DNA of 64,000 bases from Zygnema circumcarinatum SAG 698-1b (Eukaryota; Plantae; Zygnematophyceae), in assembly GCA_037447605.1 (NCBI GenBank), contig CM074819.1:1758297-1822296 (forward strand), in the 5' to 3' direction. Below are positions 11,291-41,970 of this stretch, piece by piece (the first letter of the stretch is position 1; each line of letters opens with the position of its first letter). The notes under the pieces are model-generated. The model saw only the letters and a list, made by a program, of their open reading frames with translations. It was not told the origin of the DNA and did not search any database. Both the position numbers and the translations under genes were made by a program.

Positions 11291-11494
11291 AAAAAAAAAT
11301 TTTTTTTTTTTTTTTTTTTTGGATTGTGGAACGGAATGTGGTATACGTGTTATCCAGTCAGAGATTGCGACGTGGGTGTTGTGTGTTTTCTTGATTTTTT
11401 GTAGGAAATGGGTCTTATTTTATTCAATCAAGTGTTGCCACGTTGCCAATAATTTTTTATGTTTATCGATGTTTTCAATTTCTATATTATCGTT

Positions 11495-17500: not shown

Positions 17501-20367
17501 GTTTGCCTTTACGTTCTTGTTCAAGATCTGTGCGGTTTGTTAATACTAACAAACCGAATGATAGGTTATTGTTGATAAAAGCAGACAAGGATTTAAAAAA
17601 ATTAAGGCCTGAAGATGAAAATGTTTATATACCAAACGCTTTGCTAACAAGGTACACTGAAAGGCCAGACTTACTTGAAGAGCTCTGTTTAGCTGAATTT
17701 GCAGCATCTTATGATGAGGTTTACAGCAAATCTGACGGCAATGAGGACGGAGAAAACGACGGAAACGATGATGAAGATTCATATCAGGTACATATAGCAA
17801 ACAGCAGTCAACAAGTCTATGGGCCTGATAAATCAAAGTTTCAAAGATATTATCGTTTAAGAAAAAAGAAACACACTTTGAAATATGTTAGAGGCAGATC
17901 AGATGACGAGGATGATGTGCGTCGTGTTTTAATTATGTTATTTTATCCGTGGCGTAATGAAGAGTCATTACAAAACACAGAATATGTTAATCAGCTGTAT
18001 GAACATCACAATGGCCGTATAGAGTCAATAAGACAATTATTTGAAAAAGAAATTGTGAACTGGGATGATCTTTTCGTAGAAATAAGAGAAGAATTACAGA
18101 ATGAAAGAGTCGGTGACATACCGTATACAAATATTATTAATGATGATGTCAACGCAGAATTTGACATGAATCGCGAGCTTGGATTAAATACAGGTTCTTC
18201 TTTTCGCGAATATGTGGTAACAAATAAATTGGTCTCAGATGATGAGTATAAAAATATGGCTAGGTCTTTAAACAGAGAACAAAAGCTTTTTTTTTATCAT
18301 GTGCTTCATCACGTAAAAAAAACAGATGAACCATTACGAGTTTTTTTAACAGGAGGAGCTGGTGTAGGAAAATCCAGATTAGTACAAACATTATATGAAG
18401 GTTTAGTTCGTTTATTCAATAAAGACACAAACACAAACTTTGATGAACCACGAGTTCTGCGTTTAGCTCCCACTGGCACTGCAGCCTTCAACATTAATGG
18501 TCATACGATACATGGTGCTCTAAGTATACCGTATACACAGAGTAAAAATATGTGTCTTACGGATGAAAAAAAAAATACTCTTTGGTCAAAATTAAGCAGT
18601 ATTAAATTTGTCATAATAGATGAAGTGTCTATGGTTGGACAGCGTTTATTTATGGCAGTTGATGATAGACTAAGAACACTTTTCTGTAAAACTAAACCGT
18701 TTGGTGGATTGCACATGCTTTGTGTTGGTGATTTTTTCCAATTAGCACCAGTGAAAGACTCATATGTATTTGCTAACAGTGATCATGATTATTCTGTACT
18801 AGTGAACAGTTTATGGAAAGATTTATTTGTTATGTTCGAACTTACAGAAATTATGAGACAAAAAAATGCGCTATTGTTCGCTGAAATATTGAACAGATTA
18901 CGTGAGGGAAACCATACTAATGATGATATCAACCAATTGAAAAACAGAGTAGTAAGTACAGATCATAATCCTGATTTAACATTAGTACATTTATATCGGG
19001 TGCGAGTCTTAGTAGAAAAACATAATCGTCGTGTTTATGAATCTATGGCAACTGAATCTGTAGAACTAACAGCTGAAGATACAAATACGTACAATACTTC
19101 GTGGCGATTTGTTTTACCAGACGATGTATATAACGATCCTCGGAAGACAGCGCAATTACATTCTGTTTTACGACTGCGGGTAGGTTTGCGAGTTGAAATG
19201 ACAATGAATGTGGATGTTTCGGACGGCCTAACTAACGGTGCAACGGGTGTAGTGAAATGTTTTAGTCGTGTTGACAATAGAGTATGTATAGTTTGGGTGC
19301 TATTTGATAATGCTGACGTTGGCAGAAATCGTAGGGCTGATCTCTCTGCGTATTACGAACGCTTCACAATCTGTCGAGATTGGACAGGTATTTCAAGAGA
19401 ATCACGTTCCTTTTCTTTTGCAAATAATGACCAATGTTCAATAAATCGTTCTCAATTTCCATTGGCTCCAAATTCAGCTATTACTATACACAGAGCACAA
19501 GGGAAAAGTTTGACAGCTGGTTATGTCAATTTGACAGGGAGCATCGGACACGGTATGCATTATGTTGCTTTAAGTCGTTTTGAAACGTTGTCAAACTTGT
19601 GTATATATGATCTAAATGAAAGCAGAATAAAAGTTTCAGAAAATGTAAAAAAAGACATGACCAGATTACGAAATGAATGCAAAATGATTTTATGTCCTGC
19701 TGAAATAAACGTAAATAATAATATAAACGCAATTCATATTACTTATCAAAATATTAGATCATTAAAAAAAAACAAAGTTGAGTTAGAAAATTCAACACAT
19801 GTTGATTGTGATTTGCTTTTAGTAGTTGAAGCATGGCTGTCAAGTACTGACGACTTTAAAAGTCTTGAAATAGCTGGTTTTTCAAATCGTGGATATGTAG
19901 GTGATAGCCACATTGACAATAGTCAACACGATGGTATAATGTTGTACTCAAAAATAAATATTAGATTTATTAAGCAATTTAAAAACATTGGCTGTCATTT
20001 AGTTTTAGTGCGTACTACGAAAGGAAATAATGTTATATTCATATGTGTAATATACCGTAAACCGAAATCTGTATCGCTTATGTTTATAGCTAATAAAATA
20101 AGGGATATGATTAAAAATATTAACGGGAAAATTATTATAATGGGTGATTTTAATGAAGACTGGTTACTTACACCACACTCAATAGATGTTACAAATTATA
20201 AGTCTGTAATGGAGTCATTAGGTTTTAAACAAATCATACAGGAATCAACAACAGAGTACGGGAGCATGTTAGATCATGTGTGGATAAATTCAAATTGTCA
20301 TGTTATTGCAAAAGTGATGGAAGCTTATTGGAGTGATCATAATCCTGTATATTTGCAAGCAATGTGA
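14527..20367 (+). CDS. Helentron RepHel transposase: Cys-rich N-terminal region, HUH Rep, PIF1-family SF1B helicase and C-terminal AP-like (EEP) endonuclease, 1946 aa, intronless
   Basis: Rep DEFQQRGSPHTH and KYIVSYMCK; helicase TGGAGVGKS, LAPTGTAA, IIDEVSMVG, GDFFQLAPV, LTEIMRQ, QFPL..AITIHRAQGKS, YVALSR; EEP motifs YQNIRS, VEAW, IYRKP, MGDFN, LDHVW, WSDHNP. Confidence 0.96.
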   Translation: MSDYSLRSLKRRRRDSNNQCLRVFNNVGCHVLINGVTTIDYQNCDVQNPVFIGLKRINGNQWQGKLTINKIWDLCLGVFPCSCLAAYAYDYSLCRVRCSSRERRNFDHMTDLSHFDIKEVNICVDKMLFKYGLLTTQDGNFQTVKDLGVYESDNMWTSLFVMCHEGRFSYVKIKEADNIEITKVYRDMFMKKLSFDSFYGLNYENDEKFINMSETDLNILSNICNDFMKKNFPSSFYVAKHQFFVSTREGPTCVCVCCSQLFFKRYMKDVLPYKNDVHKYCVEELCNKYGYQMCLRCFKNANQNKIPLLSRQNIKFHEKPSVLHNLNTVEKRLISPRIPFMVIRDLKIKRLGQMGLKGSVVNVPSIVNTTVLKLPRVRNELETICLRFKRKLSYKTAVWSETIRPQAVLTSLAWLCDHGELWKEAGVSMCDINARILRQCQTDIDVLGARTDDDEDDVSSEGEAVDSDDDSHMSGANIEEDHNDDDINIGNYESLLDSSDLYPDNILEVAPGEDQTPLGLFYDEHSEELSYPTIFCGKKRFKDKKIHYLDVCKWELRNVDRRAATNISNIFFKLRKYQISQLSNIIYAKMRRRKLSGLTGINAGNLLDQKFKTQLFKNDVMYREFSKLRGSPQYWEQNRSDVFAMLRQLGRPTFFMSLSMADSRWKELHVILSKVVDHKDITEDDAAVMSYEDRARLIRSDPITCARYYRNRVESLFNICLKKCPEIIGQLQDWFCVDEFQQRGSPHTHCLLYAGCFEDMFKSNGVFDNNLMIKFIDKNITCSKDAVSNDLVKLQIHRHARRYCSRKKNGMVSCRFGYPIPPMRQTCILNPLTNITEDEKAEHKKNWISIKVCLEKKGVDLENTQSFDELLDELKINEHTYMTAVQWSLDRPTVMLKRDVSEIRINNYNAKILQLWSANMDIQFCLEPYAVAKYIVSYMCKGQSGMSSLMDNACREAKKKNSNLQQQLSVAGNVFFRAHEVSAQEAVYLVLGLPLRSCSRSVRFVNTNKPNDRLLLIKADKDLKKLRPEDENVYIPNALLTRYTERPDLLEELCLAEFAASYDEVYSKSDGNEDGENDGNDDEDSYQVHIANSSQQVYGPDKSKFQRYYRLRKKKHTLKYVRGRSDDEDDVRRVLIMLFYPWRNEESLQNTEYVNQLYEHHNGRIESIRQLFEKEIVNWDDLFVEIREELQNERVGDIPYTNIINDDVNAEFDMNRELGLNTGSSFREYVVTNKLVSDDEYKNMARSLNREQKLFFYHVLHHVKKTDEPLRVFLTGGAGVGKSRLVQTLYEGLVRLFNKDTNTNFDEPRVLRLAPTGTAAFNINGHTIHGALSIPYTQSKNMCLTDEKKNTLWSKLSSIKFVIIDEVSMVGQRLFMAVDDRLRTLFCKTKPFGGLHMLCVGDFFQLAPVKDSYVFANSDHDYSVLVNSLWKDLFVMFELTEIMRQKNALLFAEILNRLREGNHTNDDINQLKNRVVSTDHNPDLTLVHLYRVRVLVEKHNRRVYESMATESVELTAEDTNTYNTSWRFVLPDDVYNDPRKTAQLHSVLRLRVGLRVEMTMNVDVSDGLTNGATGVVKCFSRVDNRVCIVWVLFDNADVGRNRRADLSAYYERFTICRDWTGISRESRSFSFANNDQCSINRSQFPLAPNSAITIHRAQGKSLTAGYVNLTGSIGHGMHYVALSRFETLSNLCIYDLNESRIKVSENVKKDMTRLRNECKMILCPAEINVNNNINAIHITYQNIRSLKKNKVELENSTHVDCDLLLVVEAWLSSTDDFKSLEIAGFSNRGYVGDSHIDNSQHDGIMLYSKINIRFIKQFKNIGCHLVLVRTTKGNNVIFICVIYRKPKSVSLMFIANKIRDMIKNINGKIIIMGDFNEDWLLTPHSIDVTNYKSVMESLGFKQIIQESTTEYGSMLDHVWINSNCHVIAKVMEAYWSDHNPVYLQAM

Positions 20368-22420
20368 TGACTTTGAAATCTTAATATTTAATGTTTTAAG
20401 TTACTGCAGAGGAGAAAACATGTGGAAAAATCTAATTTCACGCAGGTTGATAACTTGATGGTGTTCATCATGAAGAGGTATGTCACGAACTTATGATTAA
20501 AAAAACTCCGTTATTTTTATGTAACAAAACAAATTGTTATTTTTATATGGAACATTTACAGCAACAATAAATAATTAATTGTATGTAACAATGATAAATA
20601 CAGATTATGATTATCTTCATTTGTAAGTAACTGCACTTAAAAGAATTTTTTTTTTTTTTTTTTTTAAGTCACAATATTTACACTACTGTTTTACTATTTA
20701 CAGAGAAATTGCGGGACGCAAATCAATAATCTTCAGCAATACAACAAAACTCTGAACAGCCACAAAGACGGAATTAGCATTGAAGTTGTCTTTTATGACA
20801 TTTCAATGTAGGTAAGAACACAAACAAACAACACTCTCAAAAATATTAACTCTCAATATTTCATATCATAGATGTTAATTCAAACATTGTTTGTTTCATG
20901 ATGATGCAGACAGAAGTAAAAATAGATCATCTCAATTTTTTCTGCAAAAAACTATGTCTACACACCAGTCGACATACATGTGTACACAAAAAAATCAGGT
21001 AACAAAGTTCCACCTACAAAACGATTCTAAATACTTATAGTAAAACATTGACTAATAACATCAATATTTGGAATTGCAGGTGTGGATAGACACCAACAAC
21101 ACCGCACAAGAACGAATACACACTTATTTCGATGACATCAAGCAGATCTCAAGAATATTACAAGAAAGATTGTAGCGACATATACATTAATGTCTGCTAT
21201 CAATATTATCTTCAAATCACAAGAAAAATAAGTAGATGGTTTTTAAAGAGATGTTGGCGTATGCAATGACAACATATCTTAGATCGTATCTTACCTATGG
21301 TTTGACTAGGATTTTCTGTATATTAACAAAATTCTACTTAGACGTTTACAAACTATAAACAAAAACTTTGAAGTCTCTTAAAAACTTTTACAGCAATATC
21401 AGACTGCCGTCCGCGAACTCCAATTTTGTTGCGTCTCGATTCGTCATTCAATGTCTTCAACATACTTTTCACATCATATGATGCTGACACAAACATGTCG
21501 CTTTTTGTGTTGCGCCTAAATATTATAAATGTGCGCGTTTCGAAAATCCTAATCACGAAACGTACATCCGACGAAAACGGTTTGTTTTCTAAAATGTATG
21601 AAACAGCAATATTGCCAAATCAAACTTAATACTGCTGCGCAAAAAAAAACGTACACAACATTTACTTAAAAGAGCACTGTATAAAGTCATTACCTAAAAC
21701 AACAATAACAAAAAAAAAAAAAATAAACGTCCAAAATAATCCAAACAGAATAAGGGCCAACCTCCATGAGCGTTTGTCAGTACCGCCACATCGGATTAGA
21801 GTCAAGAAGGGAGAATTCCGGGTTCCATCAGAGGTCGCGCTAGCCAATCAGCAGTCGCCACGTTTCGTCCACTGTGATGGGGTTTCTTGGGCATGCTGCA
21901 CAAGTGGCGTCCACTGATTAGCGCGCGTTGGCGGCTGTGCGCCAGCGGGGCCGCCGTACCTCCGTGGCATCTCGAACGGATCTTTAACGCCACGCGGCGT
22001 CGCACGATTGGAAAAATCAGGCGTAATTCTGGGGAATTTTTTTTTGAGGGGCTGTTCTGGGGAACTACGACTGTACCTCCACGTCGGTCCTAATCGGTCC
22101 TAGTCGACGCCACGACGGCGCCACATCATCCTCCAAAACTACGCCTGTACCTCACGTCGGCGAAAAAACGCTGATGGACGTTGGCCGTAAAACTTCTCCG
22201 TTAAGAACAATAACTCAATCGACGTTTAAAAGACGACAAGTTCAAAAAATCTTTGATGATCGAATCTCAACACCCCATTCGGAACCAACACATTACGGTT
22301 CACGTGACGCAAACTTTCATTGAACTCGCGATGGCGAGGCCATCAAATTTACATGGATAAAGGCAAAATGTGGAACCACGAAGGACTGGTCACAAAGGAC
22401 CGAAACACAATAAAACGAAG

Positions 22421-23044
22421 CTAGGAGCGGAAAACTACGCCTAGGCACAACAACGCAGCCCTAGAAGCAGCCGCGAAGGTCACCGATGTGAGGCACGTCG
22501 CGAGGAGGGAGCGGCGGAAGTCCACCAACACGGTCACCAACAACTGNNNNNNNNNNCAGAAGGCGCCACACGAATTGTCGGGATGAGACCTAAACCGCCC
22601 GCCGAAATAGGGAGCGAGGCTTGCGTACGTGCAAGCGGACCCTCCGGTCGATCGAAAATACCAGGACCCAAAAGGCGATGACATACAGAAAACAAACGCT
22701 CATCGAAAGATTGCAATGACTCAAGGAAAGCAGGGTTAGGAGGGAGAGTTCGCAAAAGGTATGACGGACGCAAAGCAAAACAACGAGTAAGCAAAGAAAA
22801 AGCCACCTGAGGATCTGAAAGATGTGGAAGCTCATCGACCTGAGACGTATCCTCAACCAAAGCATCATCAACAAAACGATCAACATAAGATGCAACGCCG
22901 AAAGGGCAGCCTAAAACACGAATACCAATTCCATCAGCACAAGTCTGGATACCACAAGGGAGCGAAAGGGTAGAAGGGATACCAACCGGAGACCAAGCAA
23001 AACACTTCGACAAATTTACCGTCAAACGCATAGCGGCCAATCGA
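22421..23044 (-). mobile_element. 5'-truncated non-LTR retrotransposon RT fragment (CRE/R2-like clade by motif), nested in the Helentron
   Basis: RLAAMRLTVNLSKCFAWSP..GIRVLGCPFG..PQVAFSLLTRCFALRPSYLLRTLPP..QASLPISAGGLG, typical RT thumb/C-terminal region; GC-rich against AT-rich surroundings; N gap inside. Confidence 0.75.
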
Positions 23045-23652
23045 GTAGTAAAATCAGATTCACGTGAACGCCGTTTTGCAGATAAAAACACGAGTTCAAT
23101 AAACACGTTTAACCAATCAAAGATAGCCATCGCACGATTTAAACCGTCCGCCGTGGTGCAACAAGGTTCCCGTACGTACGTCGCCGTCGACATATCTGAC
23201 GGTTTGCAAGAAACGACGCACGTCTGTCGTTAACAAGGCGTTGACGCATCCATCCCGCGTGGCAATAGCACTCTTGAATTTTTCGGTTGTTACGGAGTGA
23301 CACGATATAGGTCGTACAAGTCTGCCTTTTCGTATGACCGTTTTAAGGAACGGTGTCTCTTCTGTACGTGACAGCCACGTCATCGCCACGTCTGTGAAAC
23401 TGCTACATAGAAACCAACCGTTGTTGTCCTCACGACGCCACGTAAGAATACAGAACTGATAGTATTCTACGCTTAAGCAAATATTACACAGTCATCACAA
23501 AACCGAGTTTAATTGTCGGTGCAAGTAAAATACAGTTGATTTTTAACCGACAAACCTCTAACTTCTCGTAAGAAAGTTTATCGTCACAGCAACCGAATTA
23601 AGAGGTTACATTGTTACGTAACAACTGAAACAACGGTATCATGTAATATAAA

Positions 23653-26117
23653 ATGTCAATGACACACATACGCCTAAACACTGCCAACGTACACGGAAGA
23701 AATAACACTTCCTACTCTCAAGCTCACGCAATCATGAATCAAAACGCGGACACACATATTTCTGGAGCGGAAGAATTATATGACGGTGTTCATCGTGAAA
23801 TGGTATGTTCACATGCATCAGGTGTAAAAACCAAGACGATAATAATTTTTATACAGTTCAAAACATCGAACTTTGTTGATCAATATTAATGACTCTATTC
23901 TAAAACAATCATATTTTTTTATCTAACTATGAATAGTTGTTTCTAATTTGTTATAAAACATGAAATATTTAATCCAGGACAATATATCTGGGTCGAACGG
24001 AGCATGCAGTTCAGGCGGCAAACTGATTTCAGAAAAAGTAAGTGCCGAAAACAAACTCTGCACAAAAAGAAAACAAATACAATATTTATGAGAATATGGA
24101 ATGTGGCATCATTATGCAACAACATCTGTTATTAGTTTACTGACTTATCTTATTTGTATGGTTTATTTACAGGTTATCACCAATACACCAAAGCTATTGT
24201 TTACATCTTTATCAAACACGTTAAGATCAGATTTTCACATGATTCTCACTATCGAGCATATTACTCTCCCAAAAATTGTTAATCAATCGTGTGTAGCAAC
24301 AATGGACGTATACGATGAAGATGGCGTTCGTTTCATGTTTGAAAATTGGGGAAAAGATACAGATATCAACGACATGACAGAAACTTTCTTAGGATACAAG
24401 GAAGGAGATGCAATTCGAATAAGCAATCCGTTCGTAAAAGAAACAAAAGATATGTAAGTGTCACGTTTCTTTTTAATAATACGGTATTTTTATCATGCTA
24501 AATAAACAAACAGAACAATCTAACTACAACCACCGTGTTTCTTCAAATATTGCAGATACAGGCGATACGGATCTACATACAAATTGTCACCTACGAAAAG
24601 GACGATCATTGACGTCTTAGAAAAATCAGAGAAAAAACAGTTCAAATTCGTATCCCCGCCGCCACCAAAAAATCTGTCCGTAATCAACGAAAATGTCAAT
24701 GTAAGACAATTGCTACCAGCTGTAATAACTAATATGGTTTGTTTTTTTTGCACGAAAAAATTATCGTCAACATAAAAGTGACAGAATGTAATTAAAACGT
24801 TTCTGTTTTTTTGTCTATGATTGCAGATAATGTTCGACGTCCAAGGAATCTTGAAGAGCAGACAAGAAATAAAACAAACTCAAACAAAAAATGGCTTCAA
24901 ACCATATTGCGACATTGAATTAGAAGATTATACCCGAATTCGGAAAATAACATTGTGGGGATATGATACAGACATCATCCATAAAACAGGCGTAAGAGTG
25001 GGTGAAACAGCAATTCGACTGACAAATTGTACATACACAGGAAACATGCTCAAAGTGACGTCCTCGTAAGTGTTTTAATCAAATAGTTCGTCATAATCCA
25101 AAACGACAAACAAAGATATCAAAAAATCAAAAATCACAATAACACATTGTTTTATCTGTTGTGTACTTACGAGAATTTTGCACATGTGTTTGGTTGGTTT
25201 CAGGACAACAATTATATTTCTGGCAGATGAACGCACAATCACAGCAATACATGGGCCAACAGGAATAAAACGGACCCATCCATTGGCTGGAGTTGAAACA
25301 GATACGTTGAGGTAAACCCAAAATTGAAAAAAAAAACCATAAGATAATATCAAAAAGTTTATGTTTTAACGATGTTAACACGTGTGAACATGTTTATTGA
25401 TAACGAAAATGTGATTGAGAATAATACCGAGATGAGTATGACCATTATGGTGCACACCGAAAGCGCACGTGCAACCATTGCTGAACGCTGCAATCGCGTA
25501 ACGGACGGTGGAATCTTTTGTAATGCACCAGCATACCCCCGTGTTCCGAATGGGCCAATGGAATGCAGAATCCACGGAGAAACAGCAACCATGAAATTTC
25601 TTATTGTATCTATCACAATGAGAGATGCAAGTAAGTAACTACTCTTATTGCAACATAAAGTCTGAATTCTTTTGTAATTTGTGATTTCTCTGCATTTTCA
25701 TTTTCTTTTTTTTAAACAAAAAAAAAAAAACATGTTATGTTCCCAACTTTGATCTCCACGTCTTTGCTGTTCACAGATTCTGAAAAAAGAGAAGCGAAAA
25801 TCTTCCCACATTCTTTCAAATTCTTGACTGGTCATACAGCAAGCACATTCGACAATTTATCCGACAGCAACAAAAAAAAAGAATTACAGAAACTCGAGGG
25901 AAATTTTGCTGCAAAGGTAAAAGACATACTTTTATATCGTCATATTGTACATTTAATAATTATAATTTGTCGTAAAAACTAATACTACAATTGTGTGTAC
26001 ATGATACTGCAGATTAAAATGAAAAGAGATGACGCAAAAATATTATACCAAATCGAAGACTTGACACCTGCCGAAATAAATGTGGTGTACAAAAAAAAAC
26101 ATAAGGTGAAATCATAA
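23653..26117 (+). CDS. RPA70-like multi-OB-fold ssDNA-binding protein with short introns, carried by the Helentron
   Basis: From about 24172 onward the exons splice in phase to ..MDVYDEDGVRFMFENWGKD..EGDAIRISNPFVK..FKFVS..FDVQGILKS..TKNG..DIELED..KITLWG..KVTSSTTII..ERCN..FCN..ECRIH..ITMRDANSEKREAKIF..LTGHTAS..FAAKIKMK, resembling RPA70 DBD-A/B/C with a Zn ribbon; 5' exons and start codon less certain. Confidence 0.75.
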
Positions 26118-28129
26118 TCACCTCAGCTTCTCCTCATCTTTATTATCTTTTCTTCTCTTTTTTTTCGTAACCTCTTTTTTTACGCTCCTCATTTATCTCG
26201 CTCCACTTATTTTTCGCTCCCTTCAAATATCACTAATATCTTCTCGCTTACCTCCTCACGTTTTCTTTAAACACTCTTCTGCCACTCGTACACCGCACTT
26301 CCCCTTCTCGTCTAATACCTGAACGTTCTATCAAACCTTCTCTTTTTCCCATTTTCCACCAATATCTACTTTTTCATCTATCTCCATTCTTTCTTCTCTC
26401 CTCCAATTCCATCTCTTTTTTACACCTCTAAAATTATTCTTTACAGACTGATTATAATTATAAACACATTGGCATTGCAGATAACACAAGATGCAGACGA
26501 TGAAGATCAAGGTTACGATGTAACCCTTTTCAATGGCTGACAAATAAGCAGTCCATACAGAATACGTACATCAAAACCAAAATCACAGCTTTCAATTCAG
26601 TATCAGCGACAGCAACATTGTCATATCTCTTCTGACATCATCACTTTCCACGTCTACTTCATCACCAACCACCACAATCATAACCATCAACCTTCAAAAA
26701 ATATGTACACATGTCAAATAGATTTTGCGAGTATAGCACTTTTTGTTTTTATTATTATTTCAGTAGTTTTTCCCATAAGATTTTTTTTGATTCGAGTGAA
26801 CATTTGTATACGCTATACTCATGATTTCTTGTTTTTTTTAAAAAAAAAAATTTATCTGTCCTGCCTTTGTGCCTATCATATCACAGCTTGCAAAAGTTTT
26901 GACGCCTCCGTACTTACTTTAATCTGTTTTAATACCTGCAAACAAAAATAAAAATAAAACATTCCTACTATCCTCTACACATCCGATTGCTTCGGCACCA
27001 GCAATTGCAGCAGCTCTGAATTCGGCGCTAAACAACGTAAAGTATTCGTAGAATTCACTACAAGCCATTTTTTCTACTAATAATATTGGCAAAAACCCAT
27101 TCATACGATGGACCATCTCATATCTGTCAACTGATATTTTCACTACTGAAACTGAACTAAAAACTCGATTCTTCAGAAATCACAACATATTAATTACTCA
27201 TAATTAACTAAATTCATCCAACAAAAACAAAAACTACAATTAAATCACAAAGTCGAATGAATAAATAAAAATATTTTCGTCATAGAGCACGCGAAACAGC
27301 CGCTCTCTTCGACTGAAATCGCACAGCTCCAATAGACTCCAAGTCTGAAGCGGATTCCTCATTACAGAGAAAACTATTCCTTGCGGCAGTGACATCCGCA
27401 CTACAAGCGTACTGTATTCGCTCACTGCAAAGAAAACACGACTTCTTCCTCTGCGCTTGATAAATTGCCATTCCGACGATGACACCACGGTATTTCTGTA
27501 ACCCTAATACGAGCGTCATAGCCACCGATTGACTGTCCCTTTAGACGAACCAACTGATGGAACACCGTTATGCCCACACTGCAATAAATGTTCAGTTTCA
27601 TTACCATTACATGAAAACGGTTCGGTTGAAAGGCCGTTAACTATAAAACTGTAACACGAAAAAAATCGGTTCGTACACATCGAAAAAATGAGCCACGTTA
27701 ACATCTAACAGACATCCGTAAAATAAAACGAACCAAAATTTGCCACACTATGCGATTACGGTTAACCAACAAAACTGATAGTATCGTACCGGACTGGTCT
27801 TGTCAACAAACATTCATGATTCAAAAGACGACAAGCGTAAACTGCTGAAAAATACACACAGATCGAAAATATAAATAACAACATGCTACACGTACGTTTT
27901 ACACCATACAGTACGACCGACATTGCCGACAGTTGTTGCCGGTACAAAACCAACTATTCAACTTCTAACTTCCAGTTAGATATTACCGTGACTAACCTCC
28001 GCTAAAAACTTCTACACGTCCACGTTTACACAGCAACAACAGCAACATGTACTATAAATTACCAACAAACTTGAGTGATGTCAATCACGGAGCAGCCTTC
28101 AGAGTTGAGGCTTATTATATCCTTCCGTC

Positions 28130-29446
28130 ATGACATCAAACATCAAGCGTTTACCAGTAGAAGTATTGGCGAAGATATTACAAATATGTATTACTCAGTC
28201 TTGTATGTTTATGCAAACAGCTATCCATCTATCAACAGTAAGCAAACATTTCAAAAATGCTGTGCAGGCTTTATCAATTGCCGTTATTGACAACAACTGC
28301 GCACACCGTATATCAACTTTAATATCCGATTCTTATGATGAAGCTATATATATTGCACGACAATTGTCATTCTTTCCACATCTTCGTGAATTGGTACTCC
28401 AATGCTCATCAATACCAGCAGTGATGTTTGATTATTGGACAACAACATTTGGGAAGACATTGACTACGCTGACAATATTATACTCTAATAACGGATTGAA
28501 TTGGAGTCATTTCGCGGCTTTATCGGAATATCCGTGCCTTGAAAATATAAACGCTTACATAGAACTTACAAATATTGAAAACAACCAACTGAAACCTCTT
28601 AAAAAGTTGAAAACCATTTATGCGACATTATGCAAAAGCGCAAAACGCCAAAATGACGAAATTACAAAAAAGACGTTTCAACGTTTTCTACAACTATTCC
28701 CTAATCTTCATGAATTACACATATATAATGATATTGACACCAGACTGCTGCTCATTCAACATTCGTCGTTGTATAATATTCTTATCAAAGGACAGGCAAC
28801 AAATCTGCACATTGATTGCTCAAAATTGCAACGGCTTCGAGTTGAAGTAAATGGAAAGATACAAGAATTTGTCGTTTCATGCGAACAATTGAAGTATCTT
28901 GACATTAGCAATGACATCGACAACCTTCATTTTATTAATAAAAAACCATTCATCACCCGATTAACACTACAATCACTTGAAAATAATATCGCCTGCACCG
29001 AACAGCAATTGAATATAGAAGAGTTGCACTGTAATGGATATTCTACGTATTCTACATTTGAGTTTTTAGTAAAGAGCAAAAAAACGTTACAACAAGCAAA
29101 GTTTACTTATTGTTATGCACAGTTTGAACTGTCACATGTTTTCCTTCATGCTAAAAAATTTCCAAAACTGATGATGTGTACATTTCAAAACGTCATGCAC
29201 GCAGATTTTTTAGACATAATATACTCACTTTTGAGAGTTTGTCCTCGTCTACATCATGTTAATTTTCAACTAGAGACATCTACAGCAAGAGATTTAGACA
29301 ACCATTTTATCAAAAAAGAAGAGACTATTACAACAAAAGTAAATAGAAAAATCTGGACCAGCATAGTTTTTATGTTGGTGACAAGTCGTGGCACAGTTTT
29401 CAATGACAGATGTCATAAATTATTTGTAAATATCGACACAAATTAA
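28130..29446 (+). CDS. Intronless F-box plus LRR-like protein, 438 aa, Helentron cargo
   Basis: N-terminal F-box-like KRLPVEVLAKIL..LSTVSKHFK followed by LxxLxL repeats (LRELVL, LTTLTIL, LENINA, LKTIYA, LHELHI, LQRLRV, LKYLDI, ITRLTL). Confidence 0.75.
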   Translation: MTSNIKRLPVEVLAKILQICITQSCMFMQTAIHLSTVSKHFKNAVQALSIAVIDNNCAHRISTLISDSYDEAIYIARQLSFFPHLRELVLQCSSIPAVMFDYWTTTFGKTLTTLTILYSNNGLNWSHFAALSEYPCLENINAYIELTNIENNQLKPLKKLKTIYATLCKSAKRQNDEITKKTFQRFLQLFPNLHELHIYNDIDTRLLLIQHSSLYNILIKGQATNLHIDCSKLQRLRVEVNGKIQEFVVSCEQLKYLDISNDIDNLHFINKKPFITRLTLQSLENNIACTEQQLNIEELHCNGYSTYSTFEFLVKSKKTLQQAKFTYCYAQFELSHVFLHAKKFPKLMMCTFQNVMHADFLDIIYSLLRVCPRLHHVNFQLETSTARDLDNHFIKKEETITTKVNRKIWTSIVFMLVTSRGTVFNDRCHKLFVNIDTN

Positions 29447-29689
29447 AAACTATATAATATTGAAGACTACGATAAACAAATTTATCTTTATACATCATAT
29501 TTTTTTCAACGAAAATAAAAAAATTACAAAAAAAAAAGCCCTTACTCTTTTCTCTGTCTCTCTTTTTATCTCTATTCTCTTTTATTTGTTTTTTTCCTTT
29601 ACTCTCTCACCAACTTCATCACATCTTCATCTATATGCACTTCCTGTATTCCCTTCATTTTTTCTGTTTCTTTTCTCTGTCTCTTTCGT

Positions 29690-30520
29690 CCATGTCCAAA
29701 AAAAAGGCCAATGCAACGTCTACTTCATACAAATCTCTTTCTGACAGAACAAAAGAGCTTTCGGCATTTTTTTTCCCCATATAAATAATAATAATAAAAA
29801 AACACAAAAAAAAAAAAAACCTGATATGATAACGACAAAAAACCAACCAACAGAAAAGATAATAATAACACAGACGCAGAGAACTCAACACGATGACTCT
29901 TTATAAGTCTGTTCGAGCAACACGTAACCTTAAAAACTAACCCTAAAAACCGTCAAAAAACGCACGGCGAACTGTACGGAAAAGTTGCACAGCGATCACT
30001 CGTACAAACAAATCTCCGTACATAATGTAAAACAGTTATCAATATTATAACAGCTCTACGCGCACAACATAAAACTTTGACCATAAAAAACCGCGATATA
30101 CGAAAAGTCGTAAACGCTAATGCAGCGTCTATTTCATAGAGATCTTTTTCAGACAGAACGAAAGACGATTCTCCAATCCTTTTTCCCATCTTAATAATAA
30201 AGAGGAAAAAAACCCAAAAAAAAAAGACACCTCTGATGATATTAAAAGAAGAGAGATGAAAAAAAAACTACAAACAAACAAACACACAGACAATTACACA
30301 GGATGACTATTTATCAGTCTGTTCCTGCTACTGGAAACCCTAAAAACTAACCCTAAAAACCGCCACCACAGCGAACCGCAAACTGTACGGAACGGTTGCA
30401 CAGCGATCAAACGTACAAAAACCAATCCGTACATATTGTTTAACAGTTAGCACTATTATAACCGCCTTTTTAAAGAAAGAGTACGCACACTACATAAACC
30501 GTCGACCAAAAAACCGCAAT
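29690..30520 (+). repeat. Diverged tandem duplication of about 410 bp near the Helentron 3' end
   Basis: Paired segments aaaaactaaccctaaaaaccg..actgtacggaa..gttgcacagcgatca..cgtaca near 29930 and 30340. Confidence 0.75.
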
Positions 30521-30709
30521 ACACGTACAATCGTAAACGCACAACTGTAAAACGTACAACGATACGAACTCACGAAACCGATTAAAACAACGTCGTATAC
30601 AAAACAAAACAAATCGGTCAACATGCCAAAAATACTGTAACAAAATCAAATCGAAATCGTTTTTTGCGATCATAATCACATTCTAACAAACACAATACTT
30701 TAGAATCAC

Positions 30710-31737
30710 AAAAACATGTGTACAAACAAAAACAGCCTCCACCATATCAACATCCAACCATGTGAAACACTACGGTATTTGTCCCCTCCACCACTTCGCT
30801 GTTGGAGTGGGGGACTGATCCCCGCTGCTCCCGGCAACACCTCGTGTGTCACCCTCCACAGGAACTCGTGTTCCCACCGATGTAGACATTCCCACTCTTT
30901 CACTCTCAAGGCTCTATCTCAATTCACTCATCGCCCATAACTCACAGAATGAACACCAGAGATAAGCACAGCGGAAATCAATCGAGAGAAGTGTAGGAGA
31001 AAGCTCACGGCTCTAAAACTCCTTTATAATAAGATGTCCACCCACATGAAGTTCTCCCACCACTACAAGGTAAGTCCCTCTTACTCACTACCTCACGACA
31101 CAAGTGAAGGCAGCCTGACAGCACGAGCAGGCACAGAATAAGAGACAGAACTAGTATGGTTATTTTTCCCATAGTAAAACTATGCACTATATANNNNNNN
31201 NNNTCACGCCCGCCATTGCAAACCCATGCACCGTGGGCGCACTCAAGAATAGCGACCGGAGAGTGGCCTCGCAAACCTACGACGACACCGACCTAGTTCT
31301 TGTCTGTCCGTACAATAGTCCGTACAGTTCCGCCGTTTCGTCAGCCTTCCTTAGCGATCTTCGCCCGCCGACACTTCGGCCGTACATACGAACCAGCGGA
31401 CCCACATCACGAGTGGTCCACGTGGCGCATTCCGATTCGCCGCCAAGTATCTCCCATGTCGTTTCCGCGCCGCAACTTTCCGCTCCGCGTTTTGCGCCCG
31501 CGCCGCGACCAATCAAAGTAGCGCGTCCGTACGTCGCGCACTCGCGTCAGCGCCGCGACCAATCATCGCCGCTCGTTCGAACTCCGCGCACTCGCGGCGC
31601 ACTCGCCTAAGTCAGAACACCGACATCACTAAATCTAGAAGCACTACGCCTAGCAGATCTCATGTTCAACAACTGAGTACCACAACAAGTTAGTGTGTCC
31701 AATGTAATGTCTAACTATCATACACTAACACTAACAT
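30710..31737 (-). mobile_element. LTR-like fragment, related to 33247-34573 in opposite orientation
   Basis: Shared aaggagttttagagcc..agctttctccta..ttccgctgtgc and tgttagtgtat..tagttag; similar peptides WEHEFLWRVT and MERELRWRVT; no TSD found. Confidence 0.4.
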
Positions 31738-32508
31738 TCGCGCGATGTCCCTCACGTCGCAGACCTTCACGGCTGCTTCTAGGAATTTATTATTGGTACT
31801 AAGCGTAATTATTCACTCTTTCCTTCGATCTTTCGTGTTTAAATCCTTTGCGACACGTCTTTCAATAATTCATGTGTTACATATATTCATGACATTTTAA
31901 TGATCATTCCATCGTCAATTCAATACAATTTCTCATTCCATTATTTTCGGTTTTATCACAGACATATTACCTTATAGTCACGTTTGTCTTAACATACAAC
32001 GACGTTTTGTTTATTCTTTCCTTCTGTGTTATACGGGCACGTTCGCCAAAGACGTCTCTTACGCCACACAAAAAAACTTGAACTCACACAAGTGAAAACA
32101 ACACAACTAAAACTACAACATCATACACCCAAGCACACGAAATCAAGATATCAAATACATCGTATCCAATAGGCCAACAGTCGACACACACGTGTTCCAT
32201 GAATTCTTATTACAATACACTTCACAAAATTATAAAGAAAAAAAAAAACCTTCAAAAAGGCAACGCACGAGGATCTTGATCCGCAGCCTCTTATTTTTGC
32301 AAATAGAAGGTTCGTGTTACCAATAGACGGGCGGTATTGTTAGAGTTCATGTTAGAGTTCATGTTGGACCGTACGTATCGTACCGACTCATATCGTACCA
32401 CATCGTATCGTATCGTATCGTATCGGATCCAAAAAGGAGGAAAGACGAGCGAGCGCCTCTTACGGCGGCACGAGCGGGAAGATTCGGTGAGTTTTGCTGA
32501 AGCCCGTA

Positions 32509-34886
32509 CAGTAGGGGGTCCTCATATTTTCCACCCTGGTTTTGGCCAATTTGAGGCGAAAATATTGACTTTGCATATATAAGGTTCGTGTTACCAATAG
32601 ACGGGCGGTATTATGTTAGAGTTCATGTTGGACCGTATGTATCGTATCGTACCGTAGCGTACCACATCGTACTGTATCGTTCTGTATCGTTTAGCGTCGT
32701 ATCGTATTGTGCCACATCGTAACGCATAGACGTAGTTTTCCGCTGTGTTGTTCGTCTCAGCTCGTACGGCTAGTACCGTATCGGGGCGTTTCGTATCGCA
32801 CCGTACCATATCGTACCGTATCGTACTGTAAAGGCTACTACAGCTAATACGGCTAGTACGGATAATACCGTATCGGGGCGTTTCGTATCGTACTGTACCG
32901 TATCGAAGCCAAGAAGAAGAGGGAGAAGAGCAAGAGCCTCTTACGGCGGGACGTGCGGGGAGATTAGGTGACTTTTGCGTAAGCCCAAGCCCTTAACGTT
33001 TAGTACGGCTAGTACGGATAGTACAGATAGTACGAATAGTACGGCAAACACACAGTTACCGTACAAAAAGGTGGTTTTGGCAAAATCGTGGCGAATTTCT
33101 TGAGGACGCTGTAGCACAAGATAAGTGGAGTTAAGAGGAGACTGCTGATCTAGCTGAAGGTGCTGTACGGCAACTAGTGCATCTGTCCTGAAACTAATGA
33201 AGGGTTGGATTGGGGCTGTGGGTCTGCCTGCAGTATAGAGCCAGGTGTTAGTGTATAGTAGTTAGTCACTAGACAAGTTGTTGTTGGGACATTAGTTTTG
33301 TGTGCGTGTGTTGTGTGTGGCCCTTGGCGGCGATGTGCGCCTAGACCGACGGGCGGCGGTACGGACTTTGGTCGGTGGAGAGGCGCGGCGCGGCGGAGTC
33401 AGAAGTGACGAGGCGCGACGCGACGAATCGAAAAGTGACGTGGCGCGGACGCGGACGCGGAGCGAATCGAAGATGTGACGCGACGCGCGAAACTGCGCGC
33501 AAATTTGAAGTGACGTGGCGCGGNNNNNNNNNNGGCCCTTGCAGGCCGCTAGTCGATGTTGTGAAGCTTCGTAGCATGTTGTCACGTGTGTAGTGACATG
33601 GTACGTAAGGATTGTTTTTGTTGTAGGCAAACAATTCATTCAGGCTGTTGTAGTCTCTGTTATGCTGTTCGCTCGTGTTGCGACACTACACTTACTCGTG
33701 CTGTGAGGTAGTGAGCTGTGAGATTGCTGAGCGGCCGATTTGAGAGGGGGTCTCTCAATGTATGAGTGAATTCACTATTAAGGAGTTTTAGAGCCAGGAG
33801 CTTTCTCCTATTCATTTCTCTCTGTTATTCCGCTGTGCATTATTGCTGTGATTCACTCTGTGAATAAAATGGGCTATGAGTGAATGTGAGGGATTTGAAT
33901 ATGTTATCGTCGATTGGAACGCGAACTCCGATGGAGGGTGACCCGAATGGAGGAACGAACGGCAGCAGTGGAGGAGTCCCTGCACCAACACCAGGAACCG
34001 GGGGATTCAGAGGTACGCGCAGCGGAAGATGTAGGGATCCTGAAGATGTTTGCGCCGGCGACCGGACTCGATACGCAAAGAGCCCTTCCCTGGGGGTTCT
34101 CTTCTTCTGTTCTCTCTTCAGCTATTCTCTTAGCTAGGCTCCTAGTTATTGTCGGTCATTGGGAGGAATGGAAGGCAGGATAAAGCAAGTTTGGAGCTTG
34201 GCATAGAGACAGCAAAGAGAAGATAGGAATCAACTTAGAAAAAGGGTGTGTCTTGGAAACTTACCCCAGCCAGCGGTTGGCTGGGGATTCTCATTACAAT
34301 ATAAGTGTCTTCTCACTGAAATGCTTGTCTGGCTGGGCTGAATTGGATGTCTAAATGCTATCAGCAAGAAGACTCTCTCTCTCACTCTGTAGTGGAACTC
34401 TTTCTCTCTCGTACTAGCATCTGTTGCTAGAGCTTGAGAGGAAGAAAAGAAGAACAGGACAACAAACCACACAGCAAATACAAATACTAAGCCTAGCACT
34501 AAAAGACAAACTAGCATCACTGACATCCCATCTATCTATCTCTGACAGTAAATCCTGAGTCTTAGTAGTGACAGCCTCTGATTGGCCAACTGACCACTGA
34601 GTGGCCTGGCTGACTATGTGGAGCCTTATGATAGGTCAACTAATAACTATCGGCGGCAAATTGCGGCGCTCCGAGTGCGCCTTGCTGGATGATGTGTTGT
34701 TCCGTGGGCCGCCAACACATGGTACTGCCTTCTCGCATCCTCCGTTGGCAGCTCTTGGATTTTGCTGATCCGTGATTCTGAAGAGGCATATATCAAGTAC
34801 AACTGAACTGACGCGGATCCGTCGAGCGCAGCTCCACTACGCTACAACGCACTCCTTAGGGCGGTAAATACGAGGACCCCCCACTG
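32509..34886. mobile_element. Inner copy of the CAGT-TIR MITE family inserted at TA into the outer copy
   Basis: TA|CAGTAGGGGGTCCTCATATTTTCCACCC ... GGGCGGTAAATACGAGGACCCCCCACTG|TA, about 28-bp TIR with 4 mismatches; (ATCGT/ACCGT)n and TAGTACGG arrays. Confidence 0.7.
33247..34573 (+). mobile_element. Solo-LTR-like sequence (TG...CA) inside the inner MITE
   Basis: Starts tgttagtg and ends agtagtgaca; similar to 30710-31737; no convincing TSD. Confidence 0.35.
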
Positions 34887-36969: not shown

Positions 36970-39732
36970 ATGGCCGGCGCTATTTGTCGGCTTGCTGCTG
37001 ACGTGTCATTGGCAGCAATGCCGCAGGTATTTGAGCAGAAAATGACGTCAGCGCGTTTGGCAGCTGGTTTCTGGGATTTTAGGGTTCTGGAGGGTCTTTA
37101 GGGGATGTGGGGTGCGGCCGAAAAATAGGGTTTTGAGGGTTCACAGTTTTTAGGGTTTGTAGGGTTTTTAGGGTTTCGCATGTTGTGGAATGTACAATGA
37201 ATGTTGGGTGTGACATTTTCCAAAATGTGTGAGATTTGGACACCATTTGCGTTTAACAAAATTGGCGCTTAATTTATTATTATTATTTTTTTAAAGTAAC
37301 AATTAAAAAAAAAAATTTAAATAAATGCTTCCCCAATTCTTTCAGTTCAAAAAGTTGACTCTTAAAATTTTAACCCAATCTCTCTGCTTCTCTCTCGCCC
37401 TCCCTCCGCTGACCCCCTCTCTTTCTCTCTCTCTCTCTTCTCTCTCTCGCTCCACTCTCTCTCTTTCTCTCGCTCTCTCCCTCCTCTCTCTCTGTCGTTT
37501 CTTTCTTGCCTTTCCATGTGCGTAACTGAACAGGTCAGTTCTAGTAGAGCCGAATACGCAGCTTCCAATGGCCGGCTTCCATGTAACAGTTTAACGGCTT
37601 ATTCACGGACGATGTACTGTACTAGAAATAGAACGCCTTCTCCTGCCTTAGTAGTCTCCTTTCAGAACTCTACTATCTGTCCAGAAAACACCTTCTCCCA
37701 TATTAGAGAGCAGAAGATTCATAGTAGAAATTTCTCCCTCTCATCACCCCTCCCTCCTTCCCTCTGTCGAAATCCAAATGTGAACGTTTGTTTAAAAATT
37801 CGGGCAGCATATGAAAGTGGGAGCTCTTCTAGGAGGGGAGAGAGCGCTTCTCAAGGGGTAGGAGGAGGGAGAGGTGCGGGAGAGGGAGTGGGAGAGAGGA
37901 GGAGAGTGCGACAGGTGTCACAGAGGGCTGAGTCACCTCCTGCCTTTGAAGAAGACATGGTCGGAATTGGAGTTGTAATCGCAATTTTGGGAGCTGCTGG
38001 ATTCGGTAAATTTTGAATAATCCGAGTTTGTATGTTTGTTGGTTCGTTCGACGTTGATTTTTTTTTTTTTTGAATTGTGTTCTGCTTTTTGAAGTGGTTT
38101 GGGAAGTTTTATGTCTTTTCCTGCTCTCTAGAACTTTGGGTTTCTTTTGGGTAATTAAAAGTTAGTTTTTTTTAAGCTTTTGTTGATTAGGTTTTTCTGG
38201 GTTTCTGTCATTTGGGTTTGTTTCGAAGTTCTTATGTTGTTATCAAATTTTCGGTGTCTGTATTTTTGCTAATCCTTTGTTTATTAGCTTTTGCGAGTTT
38301 CTGGTTTTTGGAAATCTTTGGTTTTTGAGGTTTAGTTTTCCCATAGAAAGGTCCTAACCCCCCCCCTCCCTCCCCATCCCCCTAATTTGCTCATTTTAGG
38401 ACTCTTTAAACTTTTCACTCGAGGAGGAGGTTCGTCCGGTCCCTTTGGGCGAGAAGTCGACGAATCGAAACTTTCGACGGAAAAGAAATTAAAACTTTGG
38501 CAGTTTCAGTCCTCATCTCGATTGCGAGAATTTAATACGCAACTAAGGACCCTCCGAAATGTTGATTTTAACGGTACGTGGTTTGAATAGGAATTTCATG
38601 CTCTCTCTTTATTTGTCTCATTCCCTCCCTCTCTCTCTCTCTCCCTTCCTACTTTTCTCGCCCTCTCGCACTTCTCCCTCTTGCATTTGTTTCTCCCTTC
38701 CCTCTCCCCTCGAACCCACCTCTCTCTCCCCTCTCCTGCTCTCTCTCGTCTCACTCTCTCTTTCAGCGTCTCCCCTCCCTTTCTCTCCCACTCTCTTCAC
38801 CCCTTCTCCCTTCCTGGTCTCTCGTTCCATTCACTCCGCTTCCCTCATCTCCCACTTCCCCTGTTTTCCTCCCTGTCCCTATTCCTCTCCCTCTCCCTAT
38901 CCCTCTCCCTCTCTCTCTCCCTATCCCTCTCCCTCTCCCTCTACCTCCCCCTCTCCTTCTCCTTCTCCCTCTCCCTCTCCCACTCCCTCTCCCTCTCCCT
39001 CTCCCACTCCCTCTCCCTCTTCCTCTCCCTGTCCCTCTCCTTCTCCTTCTCCCTCTCCCTCTCCCACTCCCTCCCCCTCTCCCTCTCCCACTCCCTCTCC
39101 CTCTCCCTCTCCCACTCCCCCTCCCNNNNNNNNNNCCCTCTCCCTCTCCCTCTCCCACTCTCTCTCCCTCTCCCTCTCCCTCTCCCCCCCCCCCCACCGT
39201 CTGCCGACACAGAAGAGCCGCAGCCACTCGCCCAGCTTCTCCCCATCCCTCTCTCCCTCCGTTTCCCTCCTGCCCCTCCCTCGAATTCTCCATTTGCTTC
39301 ATTTGTCGCATCCTCTCTCTCTCTCTCCCCCCAACTCTTCCACCCCCCACTCACACCCTCCCTCTCTCCCTCCCTCCCTCCCTCCCAACGATGAACCTGT
39401 TTGGGTACTTTTCCTGCCTCTCTTCCCTTTTATCCTTCTTGCCCTTTGAATGTGCTGAAAGTTTGATTTCCTCTACCTTTCAGATTTCACGATAGCCTTT
39501 CTGTTTCATACCTTCATACCATTACAACTTCCAGATTTTTTTTTTTCCTTTTTTTTTTGCAATGTTATGCAGGCAAAAACTTGGGCGATGAAGGATTTAA
39601 GTATTTGGCAGAAAGTTTGGCCTTCAATCAGGTACTTGAGATTCCTATGCTCCTAAAGGGAAAAAAAAAAAATTTCACAAAAAAAAAGGGAACCTGGAAT
39701 CAGGATAGTAAGCCAATGCGATATGTACTTCC

Positions 39733-39783
<51 letters not shown>

Positions 39784-39940
39784 CCCTTTTCTACAATGCT
39801 CCTTTTCCCCCTCTTTCTCTTCTTTTATATGTCTCTCTCCTCTTTCACCCTCTCCCACTCCCTCTCTCGGTTTCTCTCCCCACTCACTGTCACTCTCTTT
39901 TTCTCTCTCTCTCTGGCTTCTTGTCTCCCTTGCACCTCCT

Positions 39941-39977
<37 letters not shown>

Positions 39978-41939
39978 TCTCCCGCAACATAATTCCACAC
40001 CTCTATGCCCATCTCTCCACATTTTCCACACATTTTTCCCGTCAACTCACACAATCACATGCCTCGATTGCCTAAACTTTTAACTTCTTCGTTAATCTAG
40101 TTTTAATCTGATTTAATTTCATTCCTTTATTTAGTTCTGGTGGCTTTTTTGGTTTTTTTTAGAATGCAGAATCTTGCGATTTTTCCTCCAATGGGATTGG
40201 AGCAGAGGGGATTCGATCCCTCACCCTCCCTCTCTCTAACAACAATTTTCTCAAAACTTTGAACATTTCCGGAAATACCATGGGGGATGAAGGGGCGCAG
40301 GTCAGTGAATCTCTCGCTTTTTCTCTCTCCCTCTCTTTCGCTCTCTCTCTCTTTCTCCGTCCCTCTCTGTCGTCCTTTGTCGCTTTCTCTTTCTCTCGCT
40401 CCCTCTTCCTTTCTGTCGCTCTTTCTCGCTTTCTCACTCTCTCTCCTTCTCTGTCGCTCTTTCTCTCCTTCTCTCTCTCTTCCTCTCTGTCACTCCCTCT
40501 CTTTCTCTCTCTCTCTCGTTCCGTTTCTCTCTTCGTTTTCTCTTGTTGAGTCGTTTTGCTTTGCTCGTTTTTTGCTCTTTCACACCACGGGTCTCGTTCT
40601 CAGTCTCTTTCTCTCTCTCGCTCTCTCTCCCTCTCTCTCTCTGGTGTGCGCTTTCCCACTCTCCCTTCACATCCCAATAGTGCCCAGAAACCCTTAACCT
40701 CTGAATTACATATTGTTGCAAACCCTAAAATGTGAAAGCCCTAAAATTCTAAAGGCTCATATCACCCTGAAACTTTGAACCATGTAAATCTGAAGGCTTA
40801 ATGGGCGTGGGAAAGGAACAGGGAGAGGGAGAGGGAGGGGGAGGGGGAGGGGGAGNNNNNNNNNNGGGAGGGGGAGGGGGAGGGGGAGACAGAGGAAATA
40901 TATCACTATCCTGTATTTTTCATCTCCCGTTTATTCTTTTTCCTTTTTTGGGGTTCATCAGCTATTGGCCGAAATACTAAGAACAAATCGAGGAATTCAG
41001 ACTCTCCAGCTTAACAGCAATAGCATTGGAGATGAGGTAAAATCATACCCCATGTGTGCCCCATATTCTATCAAATCATGCATTTAGGGTAGTGGGTTTC
41101 TTACTTTTACATGGGTATAAATATTTTCATGTTTTTTATTTTTCCCTTTTATAGCGATATTATAGTGTTATATTCGGTGCTTGGGTTCTCACCATTTATG
41201 CTTTCTTTAAACACTACATGCCTTTTAAGGTTTTGAAGATGTTGAGGATTTTGAGGATTTCCACAGGGAGGGAGAAGGAGACGGAGAGAGAAAGGTTGAG
41301 GGAGTGGGAGAGTGAGGGGGAGAGGGAGGAGTGGAGGGTGGTTGGAATGAGGAGAATTGGAAAAGAGAGGTAGAGTGGAGAAGAGGATTGGAGAGCGAGC
41401 GAGAGGGAGAGAGGGGGGAGGAGGGGGGAAGGAGTAAGTAGAGGGAGAGAGAGTGAGAGTGGATGAGAGAGGGAGGGAGTTGGAGTCCTGAAACGCTATT
41501 GCGGAGTGTGCTGCAGGGAGCTAAAGCTTTGGGAGAAATGTTGAAATTTAATGACACTTTGACCACTCTCGAGCTCAACAACAATGTCATTGACTACTCG
41601 GTAAGTCAAATCTCAATAAACTCAACATTAAAACCTCGATAAAGTCAGCAACGTTTGGTAAAGTTCACCTTCTCTTTGCGAACAGAATGTATCGAACAAA
41701 ATTCATGAATACGTCTTTCTCGTTTATTAATTCGTTTATTGTTCATGTTTTGTTTTCCGTTGTGCCCTTATGCAGGGCTGTGCAGCATTGGCGGAAGCCC
41801 TCATTACGAACACAACGCTGCGATCTCTCCATCTCAAGTACGTCTCCTTTCTTCACCCGAAAAAAGGATGAAAAGACTCTGCTAGATAAAATTAAGGTTA
41901 AAGTTAACGGCCCCTAAGGATGTGTCAGCTACCTTTAGA

Positions 41940-41970
<31 letters not shown>

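Follow-up and report, generated by a model that had tools for sequence, protein, structure and literature searches.

Results

An intact open reading frame inside a Helentron insertion

The DNA analysed here is a stretch of 64,000 nucleotides from Zygnema circumcarinatum SAG 698-1b (contig CM074819.1, positions 1,758,297 to 1,822,296; hereafter the window, whose own numbering is used throughout, with annotated features on the plus strand unless stated otherwise), and it contains a whole Helentron insertion of the HLE2 group, 21.4 kb in length (10845–32295), which was delimited by its termini and by comparison of its junctions with an uninterrupted unit of the surrounding host repeat. Well inside the canonical ends of this element lies an intact, apparently intronless open reading frame (ORF) of 438 amino acids, running from ATG to TAA at 28130–29446 (stop included), which encodes a divergent protein predicted to combine an F-box with leucine-rich repeats (LRRs).

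The ORF at 28130–29446 is a real ORF and not a chance frame. A TGA stop is located in frame seven codons 5′ of the ATG. Stops account for ~6.7% of random codons in the local DNA of 34% GC, which gives a probability of ~7e-14 for 438 open codons, and when the surrounding 10 kb were shuffled 200 times, the longest open frame obtained was 191 codons. The GC content by codon position (0.40/0.31/0.31) shows the excess at the first position that is typical of coding DNA. An open frame that arose by chance in non-coding, AT-rich DNA would sit comfortably with the lack of homologues and of a demonstrated transcript described below, but it is effectively refuted by this open length, which no shuffle approached, by a GC content at first positions above that at second and third positions, and by domain matches that are significant by E-value. 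Neither the minus-strand ORFs at 26.9–27.95 kb nor the small plus-strand ORFs gave a Pfam match.

The identity of the carrier is indicated by a second long ORF of 1946 amino acids (14527–20367), a RepHel-endonuclease with Pfam matches to DUF6570 (54.7 bits), Helitron_like_N (84.5 bits), PIF1 (100.1 bits) and, at its C-terminus, Exo_endo_phos (28.7 bits). HELIANO uses DUF6570 as an HLE2 marker, reports that the endonuclease (EN) domain is enriched in subgroup b of HLE2, and describes HLE2 elements as having short terminal inverted repeats (TIRs), a stem-loop at the 3′ end and TT as their target (PMC11417382). By its predicted RepHel domain architecture, the carrier is thus a Helentron of the HLE2 type.

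Both ends of the element could be placed. When the host sequence 5′ of 10845 is joined to that 3′ of 32295, it yields one unit of a 274-bp host repeat, split at T|T, and an uninterrupted unit of the same repeat at ~32484–32660 served for the comparison of the junctions. The 5′ end reads T|TGCGTTGCC, in which the 9-nt TIR TGCGTTGCC (10846–10854) is complementary at nine of nine positions to 32259–32267 (shuffle P ~6e-4). The 3′ end reads GGCAACGCA-cga-GGATC-tt-GATCC-gcagcctcttatt|T, that is, a subterminal inverted repeat GGCAACGCA (32259–32267) followed by a hairpin, GGATC-tt-GATCC (32271–32282), the two together occupying 32259–32282. No flanking TIR pair or long terminal repeat (LTR) pair was found that would mark a separate, nested element around the ORF.

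Predicted architecture of the encoded protein

At the N-terminus, an F-box-like motif (LPvEvLakIL ... VSKhF) spans residues 6–48 (28145–28273). PF00646 (F-box) matches these residues at 16.6 bits (E 0.008) when the whole protein is searched and at 20.1 bits (E 5.7e-4) when the first 75 amino acids are searched alone, compared with a curated cutoff of 20.5 bits, while PF12937 (F-box-like) scores 13.6 bits with the whole protein and 16.7 bits with the first 75 amino acids (cutoff 24.3). Further along the chain, PF24758 (LRR_At5g56370) matches residues 77–124 at 22.9–23 bits (E 7e-5 to 7.8e-5; cutoff 27), and the F-box and LRR_At5g56370 matches are colinear and at their expected positions.

An F-box core consists of LP, then E/D-x-L/I-L and I/L, and later V-S/C-K-x-W/F. 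Read in the translation, the core residues are L8, P9, E11, V12, L13, I16 and L17, followed by V37, S38, K39 and F41, with a six-residue insertion between the two core blocks (43 residues versus 37 profile positions).

The remainder of the protein would be largely a repeat domain. About 13 irregular LRRs are predicted between residues 82 and 400 (28373–29329), from the sub-cutoff PF24758 match, a layout made by eye and the Atlas comparison; in this layout the repeats are 19–32 residues long, each starting with xLxxLxL (PHLRELVL, PNLHELHI, SKLQRLRV, EQLKYLDI, PRLHHVNF). The hydrophobic autocorrelation of the protein peaks at a lag of 21 residues (z = 2.6). Among the 30 Atlas clusters nearest to the whole protein by language-model features, 20 are F-box families (top score 0.96; recognition 2783), and residues 70–438 alone fall closest to FBXL15-type and At5g56370-type LRR clusters (0.83–0.89), which we treat as a lead only. 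Searches of PDB sequences, run with the full-length protein and separately with its N-terminal and C-terminal parts, returned one weak match, to the LRR protein dynein light chain 1 (E 0.25–0.3), and an FBD domain was not detected in the protein.

Taken from the sequence, an F-box followed by LRRs is the best reading of this architecture, and we consider it probable. The possibility that the F-box match is fortuitous, and that this real, element-borne gene encodes not an SKP1–CUL1–F-box (SCF) adaptor but a repeat protein, leucine-rich or of another kind, that has some other partner, has to be weighed against it. The F-box and F-box-like scores given above, all below their cutoffs, would be in line with such a protein, as would the insertion of six residues that the match requires between helix 1 and the VSK motif, and the N-terminus matched no F-box chain in the PDB even at E 10. 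However, the F-box match right at the N-terminus and the match that follows it, to an LRR type that accompanies F-boxes, are concordant, independent signals, the language-model neighbours are mostly F-box families, and the protein has the core residues LP-E-L-IL and VSK-F, which makes a non-adaptor protein unlikely in our judgement.

A single match to the pattern [LI]xCxE, I287-A-C-T-E291 (28988–29002), lies within a predicted repeat; by an estimate from residue frequencies, ~0.14 such matches, or about one in seven proteins, would be expected by chance for this size and composition.

An earlier, sequence-only reading of this DNA had taken the locus for an intact F-box/LRR gene of 438 amino acids lying inside the ends of a transposon. 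The ORF is present exactly as it described, from ATG to TAA, and its position within the element is confirmed by the 9-nt TIR, the 3′ hairpin and the T|T junction in the 274-bp host repeat. The F-box/LRR identity survives as the best reading, on the strength of the E-values, the order of the matches and the Atlas neighbours, and it falls short in that both Pfam curated cutoffs are missed.

A single-copy orphan with the codon usage of its element

No relative of the ORF was found by a word-index protein search of 5.8 billion clusters, at E 0.01 or at E 10, or by tblastn against JGI metagenome contigs and IMG/VR viral contigs, and an exhaustive phmmer search of 1.84 billion representatives yielded no protein of any kind at E ≤ 1e-3. 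In an exact-sequence look-up, neither the ORF nor RepHel was on record. A local tblastn search with the ORF (E 10) against six loci carrying relatives of RepHel and against the rest of the window gave nothing better than E 1.7.

In a DNA run from the same organism, 26200–30829 is represented by one contig of one depth (47.7), and no second copy of this region was found in that run at an identity of at least 85%; in the same run, the repeat at 30.8–31.0 kb reaches a depth in the thousands. Across runs from four studies, the ORF is identical, with no single difference. The ORF is a single-copy orphan gene.

Its composition is that of the element. The GC content of the ORF is 33.6% and that of RepHel 34.3%, whereas the host flanks in the window have ~45–63%. 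Relative synonymous codon usage (RSCU) of the ORF correlates with that of RepHel (r = 0.67) and not with that of the one identifiable host gene (r = -0.10), and its GC content at third codon positions (GC3) is 0.31, compared with 0.54 in the host gene. This host gene, a glycosyltransferase ORF at 52193–53332 (Nucleotid_trans, PF03407, 119.7 bits), was the only one of ten long ORFs scanned that clearly belonged to the host. The nearest relatives of RepHel are 36–40% identical and come from bivalves and corals where named, with no closer plant relative among the matches listed; such distant relatives, together with 34% GC in a host of ~50% GC, hint at a horizontal arrival of the element.

Recent capture of the ORF from the present host was also considered, and is ruled out by the composition (GC3 and RSCU) and by the lack of a second locus at an identity of at least 85% in the DNA run.

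These results bear on the sequence-only reading in two ways. Its statement that the ORF shares the AT-rich composition of RepHel holds, and the GC3 values and the missing second locus speak against the near-identical copy of a present-host gene that it had named as a danger to its proposal. It had also looked for support to other copies of the element and to homologues in the host, in viruses or in other transposable elements (TEs); no copy beyond this one was found, which is to the letter what it had said would tell against it, and no homologue was found in any collection searched.

The same data allow a reading in which the ORF is passive cargo: an F-box/LRR gene that was captured recently in an AT-rich former host without a sequenced genome, that is intact since the copy is young, and that has no role in the element. 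Host-gene capture by Helitron-like elements is frequent, and includes ubiquitin-pathway domains (PMC11417382). The fast divergence of F-box/LRR families would explain the orphan status, the gene is single-copy and absent beside the nearest RepHel relatives, and an AT-rich former host would explain both composition and orphan status without selection; moreover, RepHel is fully intact, so that little decay has occurred in this copy and an open ORF of 1.3 kb needs no selection. On the other hand, a codon usage like that of RepHel requires either long co-residence, during which stops would be expected, or a donor of the same bias, and the copy is old enough to have received two GC-richer inserts (21.7–23.4 kb and 30.5–31.6 kb) while the ORF is still intact. 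We regard passive capture as a real possibility, nearly as likely as retained function.

Linkage of the ORF to the element in the assembly

The scaffold is interrupted by 13 gaps, each of 10 N, and the ORF lies on the contig spanning 22557–31193. An assembly artefact, in which scaffolding across repeats placed this contig in the Helentron although it is in truth a separate locus foreign to the element, would be consistent with the position of two of these gaps (22547–22556 and 31194–31203) in repeat-like, GC-richer DNA. An independent Logan contig from a DNA run covers 23028–30829 with zero differences, and its two ends fall inside those same repeats. The join between RepHel and the F-box ORF would have been proved by a target-site duplication flanking the GC-richer insert of 21.7–23.4 kb, but none was recognisable by eye.

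We nevertheless consider such a mis-join very unlikely. The contig at 22557–31193 has the 34% GC of the element, which is found in no host stretch of the window, and the termini found on the two outer contigs match each other, with a single host repeat unit split between these contigs. Furthermore, the contig of the F-box ORF also holds an exon-like ORF (24821–25069), which is placed 3′ of RepHel and 5′ of the F-box ORF and has the same strand as both. It gives a sub-cutoff match to the OB-fold of RPA (REPA_OB_2, 19.9 bits, E 7e-4, cutoff 27), and Helitron-like elements typically include RPA among their accessory genes (PMC11417382).

The GC-richer, repeat-like inserts in the element (21750–23450 and 30500–31600) each contain one 10-N gap. 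The insert at 30500–31600 includes a very high-copy repeat, with a depth of up to ~20,000 compared with 47.7 in the flank (run X1), and the insert at 21750–23450 has a match to CCAAT-N9-CCACG at 21844–21862.

Regulatory signals and coverage by sequencing runs

Upstream of the ORF, a possible promoter (28020–28059, 71–110 nt 5′ of the ATG) can be read from the sequence, comprising CCACGT at 28020–28025 and TATAAAT at 28053–28059, and an AATAAA at 29514–29519, 68 nt after the stop, is a possible poly(A) signal. Together, these motifs are compatible with the ORF having its own promoter and poly(A) signal. The motif CCAAT-N9-CCACG was not found upstream of the ORF, where there is a single CCACGT only.

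In three runs of unknown or guessed type, patchy contigs of low depth lie over the ORF and its flanking non-coding DNA. We take this patchy cover, which is free of joints, as a sign of presence and not of expression, because DNA sequenced at low coverage would look alike.

Contigs of two of the runs, X6 and X7, which come from different studies, both start at 26771/26772, directly after the acceptor-like sequence tttcag|tag, and ~330 nt before this point are uncovered in both. This start may mark the boundary of a transcript or exon, or a mere assembly break, the two being indistinguishable in these data.

Further features of the element and the window

Just 3′ of the ORF is a tandem duplication of ~410 bp with 70–76% identity (29703–30560). 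At the other end of the Helentron, within its first 600 nt and 5′ of RepHel, 10940–11447 contains five units of ~30 nt, each with TTGCCACGT, a G-box-like core; this array could be a promoter of the element that is tuned to the host. Near the same end, 11227–11290 forms a perfect palindrome with 30-nt arms and a 4-nt loop, followed by A9T20, and the 5′ non-coding part at 11490–13085 includes a 272-nt direct repeat, whose copies (94% identity) are 1324 nt apart and bracket three 104-nt units in tandem (12497–12809). Outside the element, long (GGGAG)n, (GAGAGG)n and (CT)n tracts with a strong strand skew and many 10-N gaps occupy 38000–47500 and 58400–60000.

Discussion

The explanation that we tentatively favour, while giving it somewhat less than an even chance, is that this single-copy Helentron carries the ORF as a genuine, protein-coding accessory gene, which encodes a very divergent substrate adaptor of the SCF type. 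According to this model, the N-terminal F-box would dock on the SKP1–CUL1 core of the host ligase, the solenoid of ~13 LRRs would bind a target protein, and the bound target would then be ubiquitylated. The gene would have been acquired by capture in the past of the element, not recently from the present host, and its frame would have been kept open in the element lineage for long enough to adopt the codon usage of the element. The lack of detectable relatives and the element-like codon usage point to a long divergence of the gene, and because an unconstrained frame in DNA of 34% GC should gain stops over a long divergence, its intactness suggests retention, although this argument is indirect. 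The gene may also be expressed, held by selection and of some benefit to the element.

Several results weigh against the adaptor model. No homologue of the ORF exists in any of the collections searched, and at the six loci of the nearest RepHel relatives (38–40% identity) no neighbouring gene belongs to an F-box or LRR family. HELIANO counts an accessory domain as stably carried when it has a conserved position in the majority of copies of a family (at least five copies, or 50%); here, one copy was found. The F-box and LRR matches in Pfam, significant as they are by E-value, are both under the curated cutoffs, and a single-sequence AlphaFold model of the protein (predicted local distance difference test, pLDDT, 37.5) is unusable for the fold. 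Contigs from the sequencing runs of unknown type show no joints and cover intergenic DNA just as they do the ORF, and no run is on record as RNA. Finally, the 10-N gaps at 22547–22556 and 31194–31203 divide the contig with the F-box ORF from the RepHel contig and from the contig with the 3′ end.

Helitron-like elements carrying ubiquitin-pathway domains have already been published (HELIANO, 2024, PMC11417382). HELIANO reports 20 domains that are stably carried by HLE families, among them OTU, UCH, Peptidase_C48, FBA_3, RPA and EN, and places HLE2 elements in land plants, with land plants also among the hosts of the EN-bearing HLE2 subgroup b (PMC11417382). The Zygnema ORF resembles these accessory domains in being a separate ORF 3′ of RepHel, inside an HLE2 element whose TIRs are short, whose 3′ end has a stem-loop and whose target is TT, and in having a predicted domain type that belongs to the ubiquitin and protein-degradation system. 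It differs in that the F-box-associated domain of that list, FBA_3, occurs almost only in HLE1, and no adaptor combining F-box and LRRs is included; furthermore, the HELIANO cases are present in most copies of a family, whereas the Zygnema ORF is known from one copy and has no family. In the literature searched, Helentron and F-box occur together only in the HELIANO paper (PMC11417382) and its preprint. The Zygnema case stands apart in that its F-box/LRR-like ORF is complete and is carried by an EN-bearing HLE2 element of a streptophyte alga; no such ORF is in the HELIANO list.

Among cellular proteins, FBXL proteins and plant F-box/FBD/LRR proteins (At5g56370) share the predicted layout of an N-terminal F-box followed by irregular LRRs over ~440 amino acids, and they are the best Pfam and Atlas neighbours of the ORF protein. 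In contrast to them, the ORF protein has sub-cutoff scores, no homologue at E 1e-3 and no detected FBD, and it is borne by a transposon and has a non-host composition.

Parasite-encoded F-box proteins offer further parallels. Clink, a nanovirus F-box protein, interacts with SKP1 and uses LxCxE to bind the retinoblastoma-related protein, favouring replication (PMC3588083). Like Clink, the ORF protein would be an F-box protein encoded by a rolling-circle element with an HUH-Rep, and it has one [LI]xCxE match; unlike it, Clink is ~20 kDa, lacks LRRs and shows no sequence similarity to the ORF protein. The P0 protein of poleroviruses and enamoviruses is an F-box-like silencing suppressor that hijacks SCF against the defence protein AGO1 (PMC3588083). 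The predicted F-box of the ORF recalls P0 by the concept of a parasite-encoded F-box-like motif, the model on which the sequence-only reading drew when it suggested that the Helentron may direct degradation of a host restriction factor, but the motif of P0 is minimal and central, without LRRs or WD40 repeats, and P0 has no similarity to the ORF protein. VANC of VANDAL elements is a transposon-encoded anti-silencing protein that acts sequence-specifically and binds non-coding regions of specific TEs, and in the parts of the sources drawn on here it is not described as a ubiquitin-ligase adaptor (PMC5735166, PMC10398659). The likeness to VANC is conceptual only, both being accessory transposon proteins; VANDAL elements are Mutator-like and belong to another superfamily, and VANC has no similarity to the ORF protein. 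Searches by phmmer (E 1e-3), by words (E 10) and in viral contigs gave no homology of the ORF protein to P0, Clink or VANC.

By analogy with these viral proteins, a rolling-circle transposon might encode its own SCF adaptor in order to have a host protein destroyed, as Clink and P0 do in viruses, a proposal that we regard as quite improbable at present. The target could then be a component of silencing or a retinoblastoma-type brake on the cell cycle, with a gain for replication-dependent transposition, and, if true, this would be the first transposon-encoded F-box effector.

The ORF adds one ubiquitin-pathway gene to the cargo of Helitron-like elements. If docking on SKP1 and a host target prove true, DNA transposons, like viruses, can redirect the ubiquitin system of their host, and the locus would offer a way to study how a Helentron in a cell of the plant lineage deals with silencing or with its need for replication factors.

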